Source of the DNA: Dicyema japonicum
Lineage: Eukaryota > Animalia > Dicyemida
Direction: 5' to 3'
NCBI GenBank assembly: GCA_011109175.1
Contig: RDEW01000117.1
Span: 3,181 to 60,255, forward strand
Length of the DNA stretch: 57,075 nt
A program made the translations under genes and the position numbers. Shown here piece after piece: positions 12,345-57,075 of this stretch; position 1 is the stretch's first letter, and each line of letters begins with the position of its first letter. The notes under the pieces are model-generated. The model saw only the letters and a list, made by a program, of their open reading frames with translations, had not been told where the DNA came from and ran no database searches.

Positions 12345-14744
12345 CATCATTTAACAGATAGTAGGGAAGAGAACCCCAGAATCCAAAAAAGAAATAGTTT
12401 TTATTATTTTTAAATTTAGTCAAAAACAAACTAAAAAACAAAAATTTCCCAAAATATGATAATTGGTGATTTAAATTTTGGAATAAATCATATTTTGCTA
12501 AGTGATAACCTGATTTAGTTTTATGCCTTGTGTATTTACCCCCGGTCCCTCAACTGGCTAACAAAAGGGTAAAAGCCAAGACGGACGCTCTCACTGATCC
12601 GATAAGGTGATCTAGTGGGGGAGGTTAAAGGCGGGTCAGGAAATGAGAAGAGGTAACCCTGGTCTTTAAGAAAGAAGGAAGAGCGATTAAACTAAGATTT
12701 AGTTTTTTAAGCCCTCGTGTTACCTAAAGGAAGTTATGGGAACGATTATTTTAAAGGTCCCTAACTTTTTTTTGATTCCCAAATCTCATTGTAACATTAA
12801 TATAAAAAATATTGACCTCTTCTAACTGGGGACCTGTCTTGAGGTAGGGGGAATTCCCTCTCAATCACGAGATCTGTTTACTTAATACACTTTAATGATC
12901 AAGTTTTGGAATATTTTATATCTGAAAGCCACTTATTTTTGAATTTGTTTGAAATTATTGATTTTATATTAATCAACATTGTTAACTATTTTTTAAACTG
13001 GGGGAAATTTATTATGGTAAAATTGGGGACTGTTCGTCTTCAAGTTCGTCGTAGCGGAAGCCTCGGGGATTCTTGGATGCAACCTTCATACGCCCCAGTG
13101 GATTATTTAGCATTAGAGGATTACTGACTGAGCACATTTCAATGAAAATCGTAAATAGAACTGTTGCCAGGAAATAATACTTTGTTCATTTCTTTAATAA
13201 AAAAATAAAATTGTTCAAAGAGAAAGGGTAAAGCCAAAGTGACTGATTCCTTTATCCTGACGCATTCCAGATGAACCTTTAAGACGATGATTCAAAGGAC
13301 CTTGCTCGGGGAGCTAAGGTCGATTCCAGAACTCGTCGCCTGGAACGAAATTGTCTCCAGGTGGAATGAATATTTTAATAAAATGGTTAATTTTTACAAT
13401 TTTCAAAATTAAATTATAACCCCTGTTTTTCTAAACTGAACAACCTTTAGTAATCACGTCATCAAGACAGGTCGCTCCCAGAGATCCTTCACCCTCATGT
13501 TGAGATAAATGCCACTAATTGCGTAATCTCTAAATAAATTCTCGAATCAACCAGAATTTTCTAAAAATTTATTTTTATTAAATATGTCAAAGTTAAATAT
13601 TTACGAATTTGTGATAAATCAGAATATCTATAATTATAAAATTATCATGAAAATCCGATCAAAATGAGATATAAACCGACCATTATGAGATACAAGATTT
13701 TTATAAGCGATTGATCACTAAAACGTGAAAGTTTTTAATATTTTGAATATTATGGGATTTATTATGTCTAAGACACGAAGTATCTAACTGGAGTTTGAAA
13801 ACACGGAACGGCTAAAATGGGATCTTTGCTGCGTCATATTTTTGTTTTAATCATCTGTTTGTGGTGTTTCAAGGTAATTCCGATATCATTCTCATAATTA
13901 ATATCAAAGGCCCTAAAATTTTTGATTTATTCATTTTGCAAAAAAAACGTGTTGAATTTAAAAAAAACAAAAATGGTGATTAGAAGGCCCCAGCCCTGAG
14001 CATGGCTATTCCCTCTGAACTGGAAATACGCTCGAATACCCGACAGATTTTTGAGTGAATCCTTAACTCATACAGTCCTCAAACTACGAGGATATTTTGC
14101 AAATTTATTTTTTGTTTGAAATCTGCGGAAGATCATAAACATTGGCACCGAAAATCAATTTGGTCCGTCCAGTTGTTTGGGAGATTCAGGTAACTCTCAA
14201 AATCATTTAGATAATTTAACCCCCTCAACGCGTATGTTAAGCAAATTAATCGAGATTTTGAGGGTCAACGACTTTCAGTTATGTTGTTTTCACTTTTGAA
14301 AAACTGTTTGACCACGTGACATTTAGTTTTCGTGAAACACTTTTATTTTGACTTAAAAAACTTAGTAGAATTGGAATGAGTAATTCAACTATTAATTTGT
14401 CAGATTAAAAAATTAGGTTTTGATTTTAACCACGTGGATACTGTCTCCATGTCTGGGAACGTGTACTAAAGTCTAGAAAAGATTGAAGTTGGAAGTTTTT
14501 TTAATTATCATTGAAAGTCACATGCTGTCACAGGCGTTATGCTCATCGAAATAACTCTGAGTCTTATTATCTGGTCTCGGACCCTATGTCTGGCTGGACA
14601 AGTATGCCAATCATAGAAAACCAACATATGCGCAAGTGCGTACCCCACAAAAAAAGTTTTAACCTAGGAAGGACTTGTGAGTAAATTATATGAGACATGG
14701 ATGAATGTTTTGGGAATGGATAACTCTCAAGGGAATATTTCAAA

Positions 14745-15010
14745 TTTTATTTTATTAGCCCAGGCTTACAAACTTTGGTAAGCCCAGCGCAAACAGTCAC
14801 AGCTAATTAATCCAAGGTAGGAATCACAAGAGAGAACGTCTGTTTGTGTTGACTAAGTCCATCCTCAGATAGTCTATTACGTGACACAAAAACTCGACCC
14901 TCACGGGTGGGATCTGTTTGAATTGAACTTCACTGAAAGCTCCATCTTTCGGATTCGAACCCATGACTGTCAGATCCGACGTCATCAGACATACGTTCAG
15001 TCTGAAAGAC
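14745..15010 (-). mobile_element. Putative tRNA-derived SINE
   Basis: Pol III B-box GGGTTCGAATCC (reverse complement at 14951-14962) in a degenerate tRNA-like head. The ~41-nt 3' end recurs at 54606-54646. A-rich tail. Confidence 0.45.
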
Positions 15011-27160: not shown

Positions 27161-29143
27161 CCTATTGATCACTAACCTTACTGAACCTCATTGGATCGTA
27201 AGAAGGAAAGAGGATCAGCGAGAAAGGATCTGGGTCATAGAGCGCATTTCCTTACAAATCGTGAGGGAGAATATGCTCTCCCTATTAAAGAAGTAACCCA
27301 TTTCAGCAAAGAAAACGCACTGAAAATAATCAAAAATTGTATTTCTCTAACGATTTATTGGATCCAAAAATATCTGAAATTTAGATTTTCCGTGATGTCC
27401 TTTCTATTACAAAAATGGGTCAGAATCAATTCGCTAGCAGCAGAGACGAAGTAACCTCAAATCATCAGATGTTGATTAAGTTTTAGCAAAATTTGGTCCC
27501 CATGAGGCGCATGCATATTAGAAACATGACTCGATGTCCTTACACGTTCAGATAAACTTTATAGTACGTTCAGCTCGATTCTTATATTTATTCCATCAGT
27601 ATTTCAACGTTGGCTTGGTACTATGTGACTCTTGATTAAAGATTTCTGTTTCTTCTGTTCCTCCTCTCTTTTTTTCGGATGGAGTGGCGTCATGTGATCC
27701 GACTGTCTCAGGTAGCGTCCAGTGCCAGAGTAGCACGAAAAATATCATTTTCTCTAACCCAGTCCAATGTAGGTGTTTCCACAACTGGGAATAGACGTCT
27801 TCTACCTTTTCTGCTGGATCTAGGTGACTTGTGTGACTTTGACTGAATCCGGGATTAATAATAATTTTACTAGCAATTGTGCCTTATTTGTTTGAATAAA
27901 TTACATTTGTTGTTTCCATACTTTCTACAATTCAGAGTATTTATAGCACTTTCTTCACTCCAATGAACAGAGTTTATTGCAAACAGTGAATCAGAGTCTA
28001 ATTAAAACAAGGAGTTCACCGACGTTCTTGAATGTCCACTACATTTTAGAGTATAACCAAATTCCGTTCATGACGAGTTAATATTGTAGCCCTTCCGCCA
28101 AGAAGTAGTAATGTTACATTCTTAATTTTCAGTTTAGCCAAGAACCCCAGGTATCGAAAATGATTTTGACTTTGTTCTTTTCTATTTCTATTCGAACCCG
28201 GAACCACTTGGATTTGGTCCAGAACTTATTACAATATGCAATCCGGTATCTGTTACTCTATGGCCGGATTTGATAACCCGAGAGTTAGACCATTCAATTT
28301 CAAGCCAGTAGATTGACATCCTAGACAATCGGTATTTTTGTTGACCGCCTCACCCAACTAACCGGCCATCATGAAATAATCAAAATATTTATGACAAATT
28401 ACATTTCCTACAACTGAGCCATAATACTTGTACTTCCGCATGTGCAGCAAATAAGACAATTTTAGATGTAAGCCTCATTTTGTATTTTCTGCATTCTAGA
28501 CATTTTTATCGATTGTTAGCCAAACAAGTCACCTCCTACCAAAAAAATTAAAACTCAAATTTAGTGGGACTTTATATAAATCAATAACCATTAGCTAATC
28601 ATATTGACACAATCGTCACAAAGTATCTAATCTCTATCGTCATGTCAAGATGGAATTAAACAAAACTGTTGACTATCTTCTCTGCCAATATTTGAAGGGA
28701 TATCCCATAGTTGATATAATAATCAACAGTACTTTTCTCACAATTTGGAGAGATGACGATTTAAAACATATATACCAGGATGGCAAAAGGGCCTGATAGC
28801 TACAGGTTCTAATATCTCTGCTGTATATTCCTGCTGATGGTTCTACGTATCTAAGATGCTTAACGAAGAAGTCATCAGACTTCACTGAGGAATGAGATCG
28901 TCTATAAAGACTCAACAGAAAAAAAGAAAAAAAGGTTTAGAGCATTTTTTGTTTTCCCTAGTGCGATAATAGTTATAACTGCTCTTCGATTAAATAAAGT
29001 GTGTCCTTCCTGGGAGGAGCTATAGGTAATATGGCTATAAAGTGAGGTTTTGTTTAAATGCTTACACAATATTAATCAAATACAACCAAATTAAAACAAA
29101 TATAATAAATAAAATCAAAGCTTTATTCATAAATCCTACAAAA

Positions 29144-32739: not shown

Positions 32740-33140
32740 GATAATGGAAAACCGGCTCGTGGGAATGCAGAGAAGTCGTCTACGTCACTATTTACCTCGG
32801 ACAAAAGATTGGGAAGGAAGACAGTCACCTTGAAGTTAAACAAGGTCGGCATCCCTTTCCACAGATGTCAAAGGATATTAGGTGTGACAATTTATATGCA
32901 TCTCTGTTCAACACCTCACGTAGAAAACATTCTATTGAAATGGGAGAAGAAACTGAACGTATTGAAAAGTTTATCGGAAACATGGAAGAGTGGTACTCAC
33001 CCAGTCTTGATGAACGTATACAAACAATACATCGAGCCATGTTTCTCATATGCATGCGCCTCGTGGGGTCCGTACATATCTTGGACAAATATGAGGAAAA
33101 TTGAGGAAATGCAAAAGAGGGCTTACAGAGTAACGGAGCG
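32740..33140 (+). mobile_element. LINE RT C-terminal remnant unique to unit B
   Basis: RILGVTI...KLNVLKSL...VYKQYIEPCFSYACASW...KIEEMQKRAYR. Confidence 0.75.
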
Positions 33141-36100
33141 TTGGATTTGTGAAGATCGTCGACCCGGACCTACGCCTAGGGAGGCTCTTATAAGACTAGA
33201 CTCCAGATCACGGGAAGTTGGCCCCGAAATTCAGGCTGCCGTCCTGTACGTTCATGCGCGGACACGAAGGAAGAACGACGGGCAAAGATGAGGTCTCTGT
33301 TAGAATGCATTGGGATCACGTGATAATTAGTTTTGTTTTACAGTGGTCTTAGGTTAAATAAATAAAAAAAATAAAAAAATTAAGATATAATAAGATAATT
33401 TTTTATGCTATTGCTTCCCATTAAGAAGACCCTTTCTATCCTTGGAGTCATCCTGGATCCCCTATTCACATTCACTCATCAAGTGGACCTAGTAACTGCA
33501 AAGATCCAAAAGAAAATTGGAATCACGAGGCTTTCACTCACTCCCCAATATCTTCCCGCCCATCTTTAGAACTTCTATACAAACAATTTGTTCTACCTAT
33601 TATCGAGTATGCCTTTACTGCATGGATTGCCCCCTTATCAATATCGGCACAGAGCAAGCTGGTAGTTCTACAAAACCGATGTCTCATAATACTATTGAGA
33701 TCGTCGAAAAAGTCGTCCACTTCGTTACTACGGAAAACACTAAACGTCCTTCCAATCATGGAATATCTTACAGAACGCCATCGAGACTTCCTTAAGATGG
33801 CAAAGTCTTCTGACCATTTTTTCGGACCGCACATCAGATTATATGGACGCCCGCCCGAGATATGAGAAGAAACCTTCCTCGCTGTGGAGATTAATCCAGG
33901 ACTCCAAAACTAACCGCAGGGAAAGGACTAGTATGGACACCGGGATCACTTAATTAGACGTTAACTTTTATCCTTTTTCTCGTGATTTCGGGTTTATAAA
34001 ATAAAATGCTATTGAGTCGGTTACGTTAAAGCTCTTTCGATTGAGGAAAAATGTCGGAAAGAAAGAGAAGGATCACTTATCAGATGGTAAGAATATAATT
34101 CTTGCCACAATGTGGCAAAGTTACCGAAAGAATGAGCAACTTGAGAGTATTAAACATAATCTTTTTTCTACTTGAGCTTTCCGAAAAAAAGTGTAGAAAA
34201 TTTATTCCAGAAGCAGCTTGACAGAATTAAGCTATTTTTTAGGTTTTATTTTCATTTATTATACATCTGAAAAAATTTTTGTTTTGATTGACGAAACTGA
34301 CATCCGGGGACAGAAATATGTCACTTATTGGTAGAATTTCTGATCTCAAGAAAATATTTTTAATATCTTGTCGTCCATTGTCTATTTTGATTAGTTTTTT
34401 TATACTAACTATTTTTTGTTTTAGATAAATTTATCATAAAGTCAAAAAAAGGTTAGAATTTTGAAAATTTAAAACCAATAAAGTCAATTTTTATAAAGTC
34501 AAAAGTGAATTTAAAGTCAATAAGTCAATTTTTATAAAGTCAAAAGTGAAGTTAAAGTCAATAAAGTCAATTTTTAGGTCAAATTTCCGATTTATAAAGT
34601 CAAAAAATCCCCATATTGATCACTAACCTTACTAAACCTCATTGGATCGTAAAAAGGAAAGAGGATCAGCAAGAAAGAATCTGGGTCATAGAGCACATTT
34701 CCTTACGAATTGTGAGGGAGAATATGCTCTCCCTATCAAAGAAGTAACCCATTTCAGCAAAGAAAACGCACTGAAAATAATCAAAAATTGTATTTCTCTA
34801 ACGATTTATTGGAATCCAAAAATATCTTAAATTTAGATTTTCCGTAATGTCCTTTCTATTACAAAAATGGGTCAGAAAGCAATTCGCTAGCAGCAGAGAC
34901 GAAGTAACCTCAAATCATCAAGATGTTGATTAAGTTTTAGTAAAATTTGGTCCCCATGAGGCGCATGCATATTAGAAGCATGACTCGATGTCCTTACACT
35001 TCCAGATAAACTTTATAGTAAGTTCAGCTCAATTCTTATATTTATTCCATCAGTATTTTAACGTTGGCCTGCTACTATGTGACTCTTGATTAAAGATTTC
35101 TGTTTCTTCTGTTCCTCCTCTCCTTTTTCGGATGGAGTGGCGTCATGTGATCCGACTGTCTCAGGCACCGCCCAGTGCCAGAGTAGCACTAAAAAGATCA
35201 TTTTCTCTCCCCCAGTCCAATGTAGGTGTTTCCACAACTGGGAATAGACGTCTTCTACCTTTTCTGCTGGATCTAGGTGACTTGTGTGACTTTGACTGAA
35301 TCCGGGTTAATAATAATTTCATTAGCAATTGGAGCCTTATTTGTTTGAATAAATTACATCTGTTGTTTCCATACTTTCTACAATTCAGAGTATTTATAGC
35401 ACTTTCTTCACTCCAATGAACAGAGTTTATTGCAAACAGTGAATCAGAGTCTAATAAAACAAGGAGTTCACCGACGTTCTTGAATATCCACTACATTTTA
35501 GAGTATAACCAAATTCCGTTCATGACGAATTAATATTGTAGCCCTTCCGCCAAGAAGTAGTAATGTTACATTCTTAAACCTCAGTTTAGCCAAGAACCCC
35601 AGGTATTGAAAATGATTTTGACTTTGTTCTTTTCTATTTCTATTCGAACCCGGAACCACTTGGATTTGGTCCAGAACTTATTACAATATGCAATCCGGTA
35701 TCTGTTAGTCTATGGTTGGATTTGATAATCCGAGTGTTAGACCATTCAATTTCAAGCCAGTGGATTGGCATCCTAGACAATCGGTATTTTTGTTGCCTCA
35801 CCCAACTAACCGGCCATCATGAAATAATCAAAATATTTATGACAAATTACATTTCCTACAACTGAGCCATAATACTTGTACTTCCGCATGTGCAGCAAAT
35901 AAGACAATTTTAGATGTAAGCCTCATTTTGTATTTTCTGCATTCTAGACATTTTTATCGATTGTTAGCCAAACAAGTCACTTCCTACCAAAAAAATTAAA
36001 ACTCAAATTTAGTGGGGCTTTATATAAATCAATAACCATTAGCTAATCATATTGAAACAATCGTCACAAAGTATCTAATCTCTATCGTCATGTCAAGATT

Positions 36101-52549: not shown

Positions 52550-53510
52550 CTAACTTGTACGATCGTTCCTCTGCTTCCAGACCAATGTCCTACTGTGTCT
52601 TTGATTACTTTAGCTGAATTAAAAATTTGTATTGAGGACAATATTGTTGGTTTTACAACTTCAAGCCTCGGGTTGCTGCTTTGAGGACGATCCTCGAAGC
52701 ATTGAAGTGAGGCTGGAAGTTCAGAAACTTAAGAAATTAGATGAAACTGATATTTTTCGTTCAACTCATTACACGAGTCCCTTGCATTCTTCGAAGACAT
52801 CGAACGTAATTCGGCCCGTAGAATACCTAACTATTCTGAATATCAACAATCACTAACCGATACTCCAATCCTGCCCTCCATTGACTGGACCTCCCGGCAC
52901 GTTGTTTGCAACAAGATGTTCCCATAGACTATTCTTACATTCATACAGAGATGTCTGAAATCATTTCTCTTTGGTAGAATGGGACGTACCCTGGTTATGT
53001 CAGAGAAATCTCGTGCCCTTTACCTCCCAAACGGAGTCCCACAAGGTCTGCCCTCTCTCCGGCTTTGTTCAACCTTCGCCTGAGCAGCTGGAAGATGCGC
53101 TTGTGATGACTTGATCTTCGTTCGGGAGAGAAACATTATTTCCGCCTCTTGATTCTCTAGAACTACGTGACTCCCTCTTGGGCCTCATCCTCGCAGCCTC
53201 CAATATCCAAAAATTTCAGAGTCAAAAATGGACCTTTTTGAACAATTATTGGATGCAAAAAATTTCACCGTCCGACCACCTCCACTTGGAAGTCACCAAT
53301 CTCCCAGTGGAAGATCACCTCTGTACGAGAACCTCCAATTATCAAATGAAACCACAGAATCAGACCACTCTTACCACTTCTTGACTTACACGAAGAACTT
53401 CAGAAAAATAATTACCACATCATTCCTGTTTCGTTATTTTTCTAAAATTCCTCAGCCTCCTTCAGATAGAACCAAATCAAAGACAATACATAACTCCTAC
53501 AAGTGGTGAA
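52550..53510 (+). mobile_element. Heavily deleted LINE remnant
   Basis: GVPQG.ALSPALFN-type RT motif at ~53030-53075, with degenerate sequence on both sides. Confidence 0.55.
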
Positions 53511-53709
53511 TTCCAGAGGTTTTACTGTGATTTACTGTGATTAAATCAATAAAATGGCACTAATTTACTACAGTCTGCCATACTACTCAAAAATAAGTTT
53601 TATTGAGTAGTAACCTCTCTTAATCACAGTTAATTCTCTATTTACCCCCGACCCTTTCACTGTAATCTCGTGGCTATCAGAAGTTAATTCTTATAAACAT
53701 GGCTGATTT

Positions 53710-54167
53710 TCAAAGTCGGGCGGAAGTGGCGGAATATCTCAGACGAGTGTCTTTCATAATAAAAGTCAACCAACCATTCGGAATGCCTATCAATTTGATG
53801 TTGGAAGATGACTTTCTGATCTCTTTAAATATCTTCCTTTCCCTCTCACCAATCAGAGAAACAGCCCTTAGCCTTAAAACCCTGATAACCTCCCACTCTT
53901 TGATGCCCTAGCTGTCCTCCCAATACGGTGGATGTACAGTTTCAAAGTTGACGGCATATTATAGTTAATGACCTTTAATATAACATCAATTCCACAGTTT
54001 CAATGTTATCAACATCCAACCCACGTGCCGCCAAATCAGTGGCTAAAAGGACATTGAATCTTTCAAGTTTGAATAAACTAAGCATCTCACATCGCTGAGA
54101 CTGATTCAAATCCCCATGAAGTTCCTCCACTGATATTCCAAACAAACCCAAAACCACGTGCAACCAT
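53710..54167 (-). CDS. DDX27: DDX27/Drs1 DEAD-box helicase, 3' part (RecA2 domain)
   Basis: [43 protein letters not shown]|[34 protein letters not shown]. Introns of 23, 24 and 24 nt. Confidence 0.93.
54139..54167. repeat. Left 29-bp inverted repeat
   Basis: CAAACAAACCCAAAACCACGTGCAACCAT is the exact reverse complement of 55616-55644. A 15-nt part (54142-54156) is repeated at 54168-54182. Confidence 0.98.
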
Positions 54168-54180
54168 ACAAACCCAAAAC

Positions 54181-54490
54181 CAAGACACTCTTCTGAGATT
54201 AAGTAACCTTTGCCTCACTAAGTTGTAGGAGGGCAGCAGCTATTAAATAGGATGCAATAGATGCCGATCAATCTCATAGATCGGTCAGTCCCGGTATTGT
54301 AGACGAACGTTGTGCTAATTCATGACATTCAAATAATTGGTTTGTTGTCAACTCATAAAGGTTGCAAGAAGGAAAGAGGATATCGTACGTCGGTAGAGAG
54401 GGTGCCCACATTGTAGACGAGTCAGGTTTACCCAGACGTCTCTCAGAAGAAAGGATTCTGATTGGTCTATCGGAGGAGGGGTGGGTGTAG
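54181..54490 (+). CDS. Probable 3' end of the coiled-coil gene, displaced by the inversion
   Basis: CAA GAC ACT CTT... continues the reading frame of the minus-strand gene broken at 55645. A 21-nt GT-AG intron precedes the open last exon LQEGKRISYVGREG...EEGWV* and an AT-rich spacer. The internal exon structure is not fully resolved (one TGA and a frame shift). Confidence 0.5.
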
Positions 54491-54590
54491 TATTTCATTA
54501 TCATCGAATAATAATAATAATCGAGTATTCCTTGGGTAACTCGTATAAGCTTGTCTTAAGGAATAAAGGAATTAGTTAATGATTCTCGGA

Positions 54591-54700
54591 TGTTATGTTA
54601 TTATTCCCAGGCTAACAATTTTTGGTAAGCCCAGCACAAACAGTCATAATTACACGTGACAGTAAGGACTGGTTCCCTACCTGTTTGTTTATTGGTTATT
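54591..54700 (-). mobile_element. 3' end of the putative SINE family with an RTE-like (TAACA)n tail
   Basis: CCCAGGCT..CAA..TTTGGTAAGCCCAGC.CAAACAGTCA shared with ~14759-14800. TGTTATGTTA tail identical to 15351-15360. Confidence 0.55.
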
Positions 54701-54704
54701 CAAG

Positions 54705-55644
54705 GGTTGTAAGAATGTATGCGAGAGCTTTACCACCTTTGAGGAGACTAGTCTATCAAGACCTCTTTTAAAAGTATCTTCTTCTTGTTATAAAGTCCCT
54801 AAATGATTTGTCCATTACAGCTCCAACTCCTATTCAGTCCAATGTCATCCCGATTGCCCTTTCTGGGAGGGATCTTTGTGCACGAGCACCCACTGGATCT
54901 GGTTTTCACTCCTCATTATAATAAAAAAGACCGCTGCCTATATTCTTCCCACATTGGAAAGACTCCTGTTTATACAGAACTACGACAACATTACTCGTGT
55001 CCTCATTTTAGTGCCCACAAGGGAACTGGCCATTCAAGTCAATCACGTTATCTCCCAATTGGCCAAATATATGACGATTAATATATCAGTTGTCACTGGT
55101 AGGTTCACGTGGGTTATTTTAGGTGGTCTTCCAATCGATCCCCACAGAACGATGCAGTGAGCTGCCCAGACATTCTCATTGCCACTCCGGGACGACTAAT
55201 AGATTTAATTAGCAACAGGAAGGTCGATTTGAGAACCATAGAGGTTCTAATTCTAGAAGAGGCTGATAGGTACAGTTATTTGCTTATTTAGACTGTTGGA
55301 TGATCACTTTTATGAGCAAATCAAAGTTGTAATGACTTCTCCGTCCTCCCATAGACAAACTATGCTCCTCTCTGCTACAATGACCGACCAAGCACGTGAA
55401 CTTTCCAACCTTATACAAAAGTCCCCAGTAAATGTGGTTGTTAATGACAAATCTGTTGGAAATTTGAGTCAGGAGTATGTTAGGATTAGGCCGGGACATG
55501 AGAAAGATCGTCCGACTGTACTTGCATGTTGCTTTGTGTAGTTTATTCTAGGTTTGTTGAGAAATGTGTTTAAAAGAAGGGTGATCGTCTTTGTTGGGAC
55601 CAAAAAGGTAGTGAGATGGTTGCACGTGGTTTTGGGTTTGTTTG
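54705..55644 (+). CDS. DDX27: DDX27/Drs1 DEAD-box helicase, 5' part (Q motif to start of RecA2); no start codon found; lesions in Walker A and B
   Basis: [12 protein letters not shown]|[74 protein letters not shown]|[31 protein letters not shown]. Introns at 54774-795, 54902-924, 55099-122, 55270-291 and 55528-551. Confidence 0.95.
55616..55644. repeat. Right 29-bp inverted repeat
   Basis: ATGGTTGCACGTGGTTTTGGGTTTGTTTG, the last DDX27-coding bases on the + strand. Confidence 0.98.
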
Positions 55645-57075
55645 ACAGTTTAAATCACGTGGTACTTTGTTGGCAAAGTCAACAAACCGGTTCAATCTCA
55701 AAATCAAGTGGAAACAGCTGGAGACGAGGTATGGGAAATTCTGTAGGGAAGATAATCCCTGAAGAGCAGTTCTTTGGCAACCGTGGAGAGTAAGGTTACA
55801 CGTTTCCACCAAATTGGAGAATTCAACTAGTCGGTCTCTGTGTCTACCCAACAGACGACAATCTCCAAGTCGGAAAAACTCGGGAAGTGGTCTTTGATTG
55901 ATAAAGTGCTCCGATTGAAGGATCTCTGGTATTTCGTAGTCCAACAGACGAGTCCTCTGATTATTTCTCAGTTTTACATTCTCCGAATTGCTGCTTCTTA
56001 CCATCTCCCTTAACACTTCAATCTCCTGTCGGTTACTCCCACCCAAATACCTTCATCAGTGTAGACTGAATCTCCTCAGACCTGTCCTCAGCCTCCTTTC
56101 CAGCCATGAGTTGATTTTTGATTGAAGAACATCGCTCTTCCAATTCCTTAACGGTCGATTCCTTCTCCCCTACAACTCCACCTAGTCGGTCGACCTCCAC
56201 GAACAACTCATTAATCTACGTAACCAGGACGACCACCTGCTCAGATTTTACCGCATTTTCACTTAACAGGTCAGAATTTTGCTTTTTTAGATCCTCGATT
56301 TGTTCAACGTGGGAGACTAGCTCTGTTTCCAATTCGTCCGCGTGTTTCTACCGTAAGTTCAAGTTCCCACCAAATAAATATCGCATTTCCCGCAAATTTG
56401 GATCTCCTCATTGACTTTTTCGTCATTTTCTATCACGTAAGAGACGTCATCCATCAGAGTGTATGTCACTTCACTTCTGCTCAGTTTATCCACCAAATCT
56501 CTCCGGTGTGAGTCAGATTCCTCCAAAAGCTTCTTCATTCTCGTCTCCTTTTTCTCCCATTCCTCTATTTCTCTTTAAATTCAGAAAAACTCTCGTTTTC
56601 CGCATTTCTTGCCTCCAAGTAGTCGATCCTTTCCGTCTTTTCTTTCAAAACTGACCTAAGCTTCTTCACCACCTCCTCCATAGAAGTCCACGAGTCTTCA
56701 AGCTTCTTCAATTTACCAACAAGCTCGGAGAATGGCTAAATATGAGAGGACACGTGTACCTTCGATATTATGGACATCATCCCAAGGATGACTATCAACT
56801 GCTGAACGAAAAGATTCTGTTTATTACTTAGAAGCTCGATATTTTGAACAGCCGACTTGAGAGAAGTGATACACGTGGGCTGGCATTTCCTACACACAGG
56901 TGACTGTCCTCGAATGATGAAATAAGACAATTGCTGTTGGAATAAGGAAAACTGGGTCATAAAATCCACGAAAACGGTCTCTTGTGGGACGAGGCTGTAG
57001 TCCCTAAAAATAAGGGATGTGAAATACTCGTTTATAGGGTAATTTGACAATTTGGGACTATGAGATTGTTTATTG
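55645..57075 (-). CDS. Unidentified long coiled-coil protein, 5' part (start at or beyond the window edge)
   Basis: Heptad-rich exons (LKKLEDSWTSMEEVVKKLRSVLKEKTERIDYLEARN; ELVSHVEQIEDLKKQNSDLLSEN) separated by 24-, 23- and 25-nt GT-AG introns. One homopolymer -1 at ~56570. The frame runs directly into the right inverted repeat. Confidence 0.8.

Follow-up and report, generated by a model that had tools for sequence, protein, structure and literature searches.

A probable one-off micro-inversion splits a DDX27/Drs1 helicase gene in the genome assembly of Dicyema japonicum

The DNA analysed here (the window) is a stretch of 57,075 nt from contig RDEW01000117.1 (positions 3,181 to 60,255 of the forward strand; assembly GCA_011109175.1) of Dicyema japonicum, a parasite of octopuses. 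Near its right-hand end, a helicase gene and a neighbouring coiled-coil gene meet at a short segment bounded by two oppositely oriented copies of one sequence, referred to below as the arms. The features of the region, numbered from the first letter of the window, are as follows:

53800-54167, minus strand: 3' half of the DDX27/Drs1 gene, with the rest of Helicase_C (motifs IV-VI); it extends further left, where it is poorly modelled
53995-53973 and 53889-53867, minus strand: introns in the DDX27 3' half
54139-54167: left arm; read on the minus strand it encodes WLHVVLGLF of DDX27
54168-54182, plus strand: templated filler of 15 nt at the left junction, repeating 54142-54156 exactly in direct orientation
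54168-55615: inverted segment of about 1.45 kb, holding the 3' end or UTR of the neighbour, a high-copy repeat, and the DDX27 5' region with helicase domain 1
54181-54231, plus strand: putative displaced tail of the neighbour (16 codons and a stop) or 3' UTR, followed by ATTAAA at about 54243
54215-54650: high-copy repeat between the two genes, with a word depth about 20-90 times that of single-copy sequence; inside the segment, away from the breakpoints
54720-55644, plus strand: 5' half of the DDX27/Drs1 gene (Q motif, motifs I-III and the start of RecA2), from Pfam and orthologue alignments
54774-54795, 54902-54924, 55103-55122, 55270-55291 and 55528-55551, plus strand: introns in the DDX27 5' half
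54924-54925, plus strand: AA in the assembly, GG in all read contigs of three runs
55616-55644: right arm, duplicating the DDX27 breakpoint; read on the plus strand it encodes WLHVVLGLF again
55645-57050, minus strand: coiled-coil gene of no recognised family; its final long frame extends to the breakpoint at 55645
55670: 1-nt indel with two read alleles, 25 nt from the right breakpoint; read contigs restart at 55671

The original prediction, made from the sequence alone, was that perfect 29-bp inverted repeats flank a segment of about 1.45 kb. Indeed, the two arms are 100% complementary over 29 nt and enclose 1448 nt. The 29-mer occurs twice in the 57-kb window, even when up to three mismatches are allowed (shuffled sequences give an expectation of 0), and the arms are the sole perfect inverted repeat of at least 20 nt in the window at arm spacings of up to 10 kb. 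A search of metagenome contigs with the arm gave no match. Both breakpoints lie outside transposons and pre-existing repeats, and the read contigs that end at the arms (53745-54167 and 54680-55644) are at single-copy depth. The palindrome CACGTG, to which attention had been drawn, is present in the arm but is no special mark of it. The hexamer is over-represented across the window, with 40 copies observed against 4.9 expected (an excess of about 8-fold); it sits in exons, introns and spacers alike, and seven copies fall within 54022-55661.

Several other repeats were noted in the window. A partial copy of the 54215-54650 repeat, which has no tRNA or Rfam match, lies at 14744-14799. Copies of a 43-nt repeat occur in mixed orientation at 27495-27537, 33029-33071 and 34949-34991, and 88-nt imperfect inverted repeats occupy 178-665; both are probably copies of dispersed elements. 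An Rfam and tRNA scan of 53000-57075 gave no matches.

The identity of the split gene emerged from domain searches and orthologue alignments. Plus-strand frames between 54808 and 55644 matched Pfam DEAD, and the minus-strand frame below 54167 matched positions 38-87 of Pfam Helicase_C together with many solved DEAD-box helicases. The most specific exon, used as query in an exhaustive search, recovered proteins that carry the name DDX27 or DRS1 in their source records. With its DEAD-box core motifs and these best matches, the broken gene is, as judged from sequence, a DDX27/Drs1 helicase. Drs1/DDX27 is a helicase of ribosome biogenesis and is essential in the organisms where this has been tested.

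Alignment to DDX27/Drs1 orthologues made the split directly visible. Residues 189-460 of an orthologue, for example, align on the plus strand at 54720-55640 (plus-strand alignments as a whole end at 55640-55643), and residues 454-510 then align on the minus strand at 54163-53993, with the match continuing further down that strand. Since the alignments leave the plus strand at about 55640 and resume on the minus strand at 54163, the two halves of DDX27 abut. About seven orthologue residues are encoded twice, once in each arm; orthologues have that stretch once. These alignments agree with the original prediction, in which DDX27 reads on the plus strand up to WLHVVLGLF and then on the minus strand from 54167. 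Its further claim, that inverting 54168-55615 would rebuild the gene in frame, also held, in that flipping the segment in silico gave an uninterrupted DDX27 reading frame across the junction. By both the strand switch and the restored frame, the segment is inverted relative to the conserved DDX27/Drs1 order.

Splicing the flipped segment gave a 363-residue helicase core that is 48% identical to a crustacean DDX27. When the read alleles were used, this model contained motifs Q, I, Ia, Ib, III, V and VI in order, and the family-typical QEF/YVRIR stretch was present. In the assembly, motif II at 55256-55267 on the plus strand reads EEAD (LILEEADR) rather than DEAD. A frameshift considered at 55140 was ruled out, as a 20-nt intron (55103-55122) preserves the frame. 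All of the DDX27 introns are of the GT..AG type and 20-24 nt long, a size that fits Dicyema japonicum (PMC6543705).

Orthologue alignment found no second DDX27 in the 57-kb window. An exhaustive protein search with an 80-residue DDX27-specific exon gave no match above 49% identity, and a transcript-derived DDX27 of Dicyema japonicum is therefore not among the proteins searched. The 63-residue exon that follows the arm returned one unrelated match and no frame spanning the collinear junction from a protein database, which hence lacks the short contigs of this organism, and look-ups of the exact products of three window frames found nothing recorded.

The neighbouring gene proved harder to place. 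A Pfam search recovered no family even at E = 10, and an Atlas search gave weak LRR-like leads only, at a score (0.80) that is at noise level. It had been proposed that this gene stops at 55645; in the assembly its last frame instead passes through the arm to a stop at 55570-55572. After the in-silico flip the frame gains 14 codons without a stop, matching the predicted 42-nt join, and ends in the 16-codon frame at 54181-54231. The chance of such an in-frame outcome is of the order of one in five, and homology searches gave the putative tail no support. In addition, the two alleles at 55670 have depths of 40.4/27.7, 391.6/328.3 and 30.9/18.9 in the three runs, and their sums equal full depth. 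On the 1-nt deletion allele the neighbour's frame ends at 55650-55652, 5 nt before the breakpoint, so that on this allele the break lies in the 3' UTR. Thus, of the claim that the inversion splits two genes, the part concerning DDX27 is secure but the part concerning the neighbour is unproven.

The junctions carry distinct scars. The sequence at 54168-54182 had been read as a 15-nt copy of arm sequence, and it is identical to 54142-54156; the source corresponds to arm positions 4-18 and lies 11 nt upstream of the filler. Within the filler, position 54173 is C in the assembly and G in the read contigs. At the right junction, CAA (CAA/TTG) is common to the start of the arm and the start of the displaced segment, a microhomology of 3 nt. 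Polymerase-theta-type end joining copies nearby sequence as filler, and replication template switching (FoSTeS/MMBIR) leaves similar scars. Taken together, and read from the letters of the junctions themselves, the inverted duplication of a breakpoint, the templated filler and the microhomology are the signature of break and repair; they are unlike the scars left by a conservative site-specific recombinase.

We then turned to the sequencing reads. The sequenced specimens of Dicyema japonicum were not separable from octopus cells; PCR-free paired-end Illumina, mate-pair and PacBio libraries went into a Platanus/Falcon hybrid assembly that was reduced by HaploMerger, and whole-genome amplification is unmentioned (PMC6736024). 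Run searches yielded four runs from one sample, a very small run from a second, and no RNA runs. In three runs of the first sample, coverage is even across exons, introns and spacers; these runs are therefore genomic DNA, kept as k=31 contigs. The run of the second sample, aligned to the region, contained only the repeat at 54215-54650. Because the assembly was probably built from the same sample, the reads are not independent of it. Differences between read contigs and the window amount to about 0.5-1.5% throughout 6 kb, which fits the reported heterozygosity of 1.24% (PMC6736024) and a haploid assembly that retained the broken allele.

The inverted junction is present in these reads. In all three runs the contig covering 54173 has that site 36 letters from its end and hence starts at 54138, spanning the left junction at about 60-85% of flank depth (51.4 of 63.8, 375.6 of 623 and 36.2 of 42.6). 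The inverted order is therefore real and common in the short reads. This bears directly on whether the genome has only the collinear order, the inversion having been introduced by hybrid Platanus/Falcon merging, gap closing or chimeric molecules. Such an artefact would fit the disagreement between assembly and reads at 54173, 54924-5 and 55670, and the locus does lie 1.4 kb from the end of the window. However, three runs all have short-read contigs that contain the left junction with its filler, at 60-85% of local depth. Single chimeric reads do not produce a clean inversion with two junctions and a templated insert, and the paired-end library was PCR-free with no amplification mentioned. Furthermore, the contig ends gave no indication of the reciprocal word running from the right flank through the arm into the segment start, which argues against symmetric in-vitro template switching. 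We therefore regard an artefact, including the amplification or long-read chimera offered in the original prediction, as very unlikely. The depth of the left-junction contig closely matches neither allele at 55670, and the differences between assembly and reads at 54173 and 55670 imply either more than two haplotypes or consensus errors.

Evidence for a second, unbroken order came from where the read contigs stop. In three runs, 54167 and 55644 are each the exact last letter of a contig, and the following contig begins at 55671. One record per run fits two places in the region, which for records of at least 31 nt only the arms permit; this record is therefore a short arm-centred contig, as expected for the word at a collinear junction. 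We compared these ends with simulated k=31 graphs. The inverted order alone gave one unbroken contig, because the 29-nt repeat is shorter than k-1. A mixture of the inverted order with a collinear haplotype carrying one arm and the linked 55670 indel reproduced every observed end (..54167, 54138.., ..55644 and 55671..) and predicted a lone 31-nt contig centred on the arm. Among the read contigs listed, none had a strand-changing joint. From the contig ends and the graph simulation, a collinear and unbroken DDX27 order appears to coexist with the inverted one, and we infer allele shares of roughly 40-60% for each.

If the inversion were instead fixed on every chromosome, the DDX27 at this locus would be dead and its function supplied from another locus or lost. 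The assembly allele offers some encouragement for this idea. Only GG at 54924-54925 yields both an AG acceptor for the 23-nt intron 54902-54924 and the Walker-A sequence GSGKT, so the AA of the assembly breaks the splice acceptor and Walker A at once; the difference reflects either a mutation that disables the inverted allele or an error of consensus or assembly. In addition, the collinear junction was never sighted directly in reads. On the other hand, a fixed inversion would leave the exact ends at 54167 and 55644, seen in three runs, to be explained by two separate coincidences, the intact GG allele is at full depth in the read contigs, and the depth of DDX27 equals that of the flanks, so that there is no collapsed near-identical paralogue. 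The absence of a second DDX27 from the window and the essential role of the gene wherever tested weigh in the same direction, and a fixed inversion is unlikely. General decay of the assembly DDX27 allele was also considered and rejected, since the AA/GG difference is the only clearly disabling one. The exon after the arm has three coding differences: the balance tips toward the read allele at one (G versus E in GELHG) and toward the assembly allele at another, and the third is neutral.

The apparent coexistence of two orders in whole-animal DNA could also be taken to mean that the locus is rearranged in development. The germline and the soma would then have different orders, a scrambled germline DDX27 being reassembled, or a somatic copy disassembled, with the 29-nt repeat as a ciliate-like pointer. 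Somatic genome rearrangement, chromatin elimination and the formation of circular DNA are reported for dicyemids (PMC6543705, which cites Noto 2003 and Awata 2006), and k-mer data would look alike for an ancestral allele and for a precisely restored somatic product. Were this reading true, it would give animals a first example of ciliate-like gene unscrambling. Nevertheless, it is a single case in 57 kb and in one pooled DNA sample, its arm is unique exon sequence, and the filler and microhomology mark a repair event rather than sites of recombination. A simulated k=31 flip that retains both arms gave a segment contig starting at 54139, with 54173 at 35 letters from its end, and so mismatched the reads. 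Restoring the collinear order, for its part, would also require that 42 nt be cut out precisely at the other junction. The inverted assembly allele seems to be disabled in DDX27, which is unexpected of a gene awaiting repair, and two SNP and indel haplotypes run across the whole region, as expected of alleles. On grounds of parsimony, and given the repair scars, the single locus and the two SNP haplotypes, an allelic reading is far more likely than somatic restoration, and we consider a programmed rearrangement highly improbable.

Similar considerations apply to the view, central to the original prediction, that the segment is an invertible switch. Every frame within 54168-55615 either belongs to a DDX27 exon or has fewer than 80 aa, and ten flanking frames gave no match to a recombinase family. 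Both orientations, each with both arms, would be expected of an inverton; indirectly, the start at 54138 rather than 54139 of the contig covering 54173 speaks against this. With no recombinase, an arm that does not recur and contig ends that misfit a flip with both arms, the invertible or unscrambling reading is without support.

The best explanation for the locus is probably a one-off, inherited micro-inversion by break and repair, not a switch, present as a heterozygous or polymorphic variant among the pooled animals alongside a collinear allele. Such a staggered-break inversion with a templated insert and a frame preserved by chance had been listed in the original prediction as a competing explanation, and it is the one favoured by the filler, the microhomology and the contig ends. 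We envisage an ancestral order in which both genes would have lain in tandem on the minus strand, the neighbour first and then DDX27. A first break inside a DDX27 exon, staggered by 29 nt, would have been filled in so as to leave the 29 nt on both ends, giving the perfect inverted duplication that flanks the segment. A second break may have fallen at or just past the end of the neighbour's coding sequence. The right junction would then have been sealed on the 3-nt CAA/TTG microhomology, and the left junction with a filler of 13-15 nt copied from the arm 11 nt away by polymerase-theta-type end joining; alternatively, replication template switching could have left identical scars. On the inverted allele, most of helicase domain 2 would be cut off from domain 1 and from the DDX27 promoter, and the allele would thus be null, while the collinear allele, presumably functional, would coexist with it in the pooled-animal DNA.

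If this reading is true, the locus is an otherwise ordinary structural variant whose scar can be read base by base, from the 29-nt stagger to the filler and the microhomology. It is also likely to represent a heterozygous knockout of an essential ribosome-biogenesis gene in a largely clonal and highly heterozygous parasite. Because the haploid assembly kept the broken allele, DDX27 will appear missing or fragmented in gene sets and in BUSCO-type scores. Moreover, whether somatic rearrangement in dicyemids reaches genes could be tested cheaply at this locus.

These results invite comparison with several known systems. The encoded protein has the DEAD and Helicase_C domains common to DDX27 and yeast Drs1; it differs in its motif II, EEAD in the assembly, and in that the modelled part comprises neither the N-terminal extension nor the C-terminal tail. 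The segment resembles bacterial invertons and the unscrambled genes of ciliates, in that short inverted repeats bound it and a flip would rebuild a reading frame. In contrast to both, there is no recombinase and no recurring site here, and what is repeated is part of the broken exon itself, at a single locus. The junctions fit polymerase-theta end joining, with 13-15 nt of filler drawn from 11 nt away and a 3-nt microhomology, the enzyme being suggested by the scar alone.

The closest parallel is with the staggered-break inversions of Drosophila, which carry inverted duplications of single-copy sequence (Ranz et al, 2007; PMC1885836). In both cases, sequence that was single-copy in the ancestor stands at both ends of the segment in opposite orientation, neither a transposon nor a pre-existing repeat lies at the breakpoints, and genes can be broken. 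The two differ in scale, the Drosophila examples being kilobase- to megabase-scale, whereas the segment described here is 1.45 kb long with a 29-nt duplication at one breakpoint. They differ also in consequence, since in Dicyema japonicum the break cuts an essential gene and was probably retained only through the intact allele.
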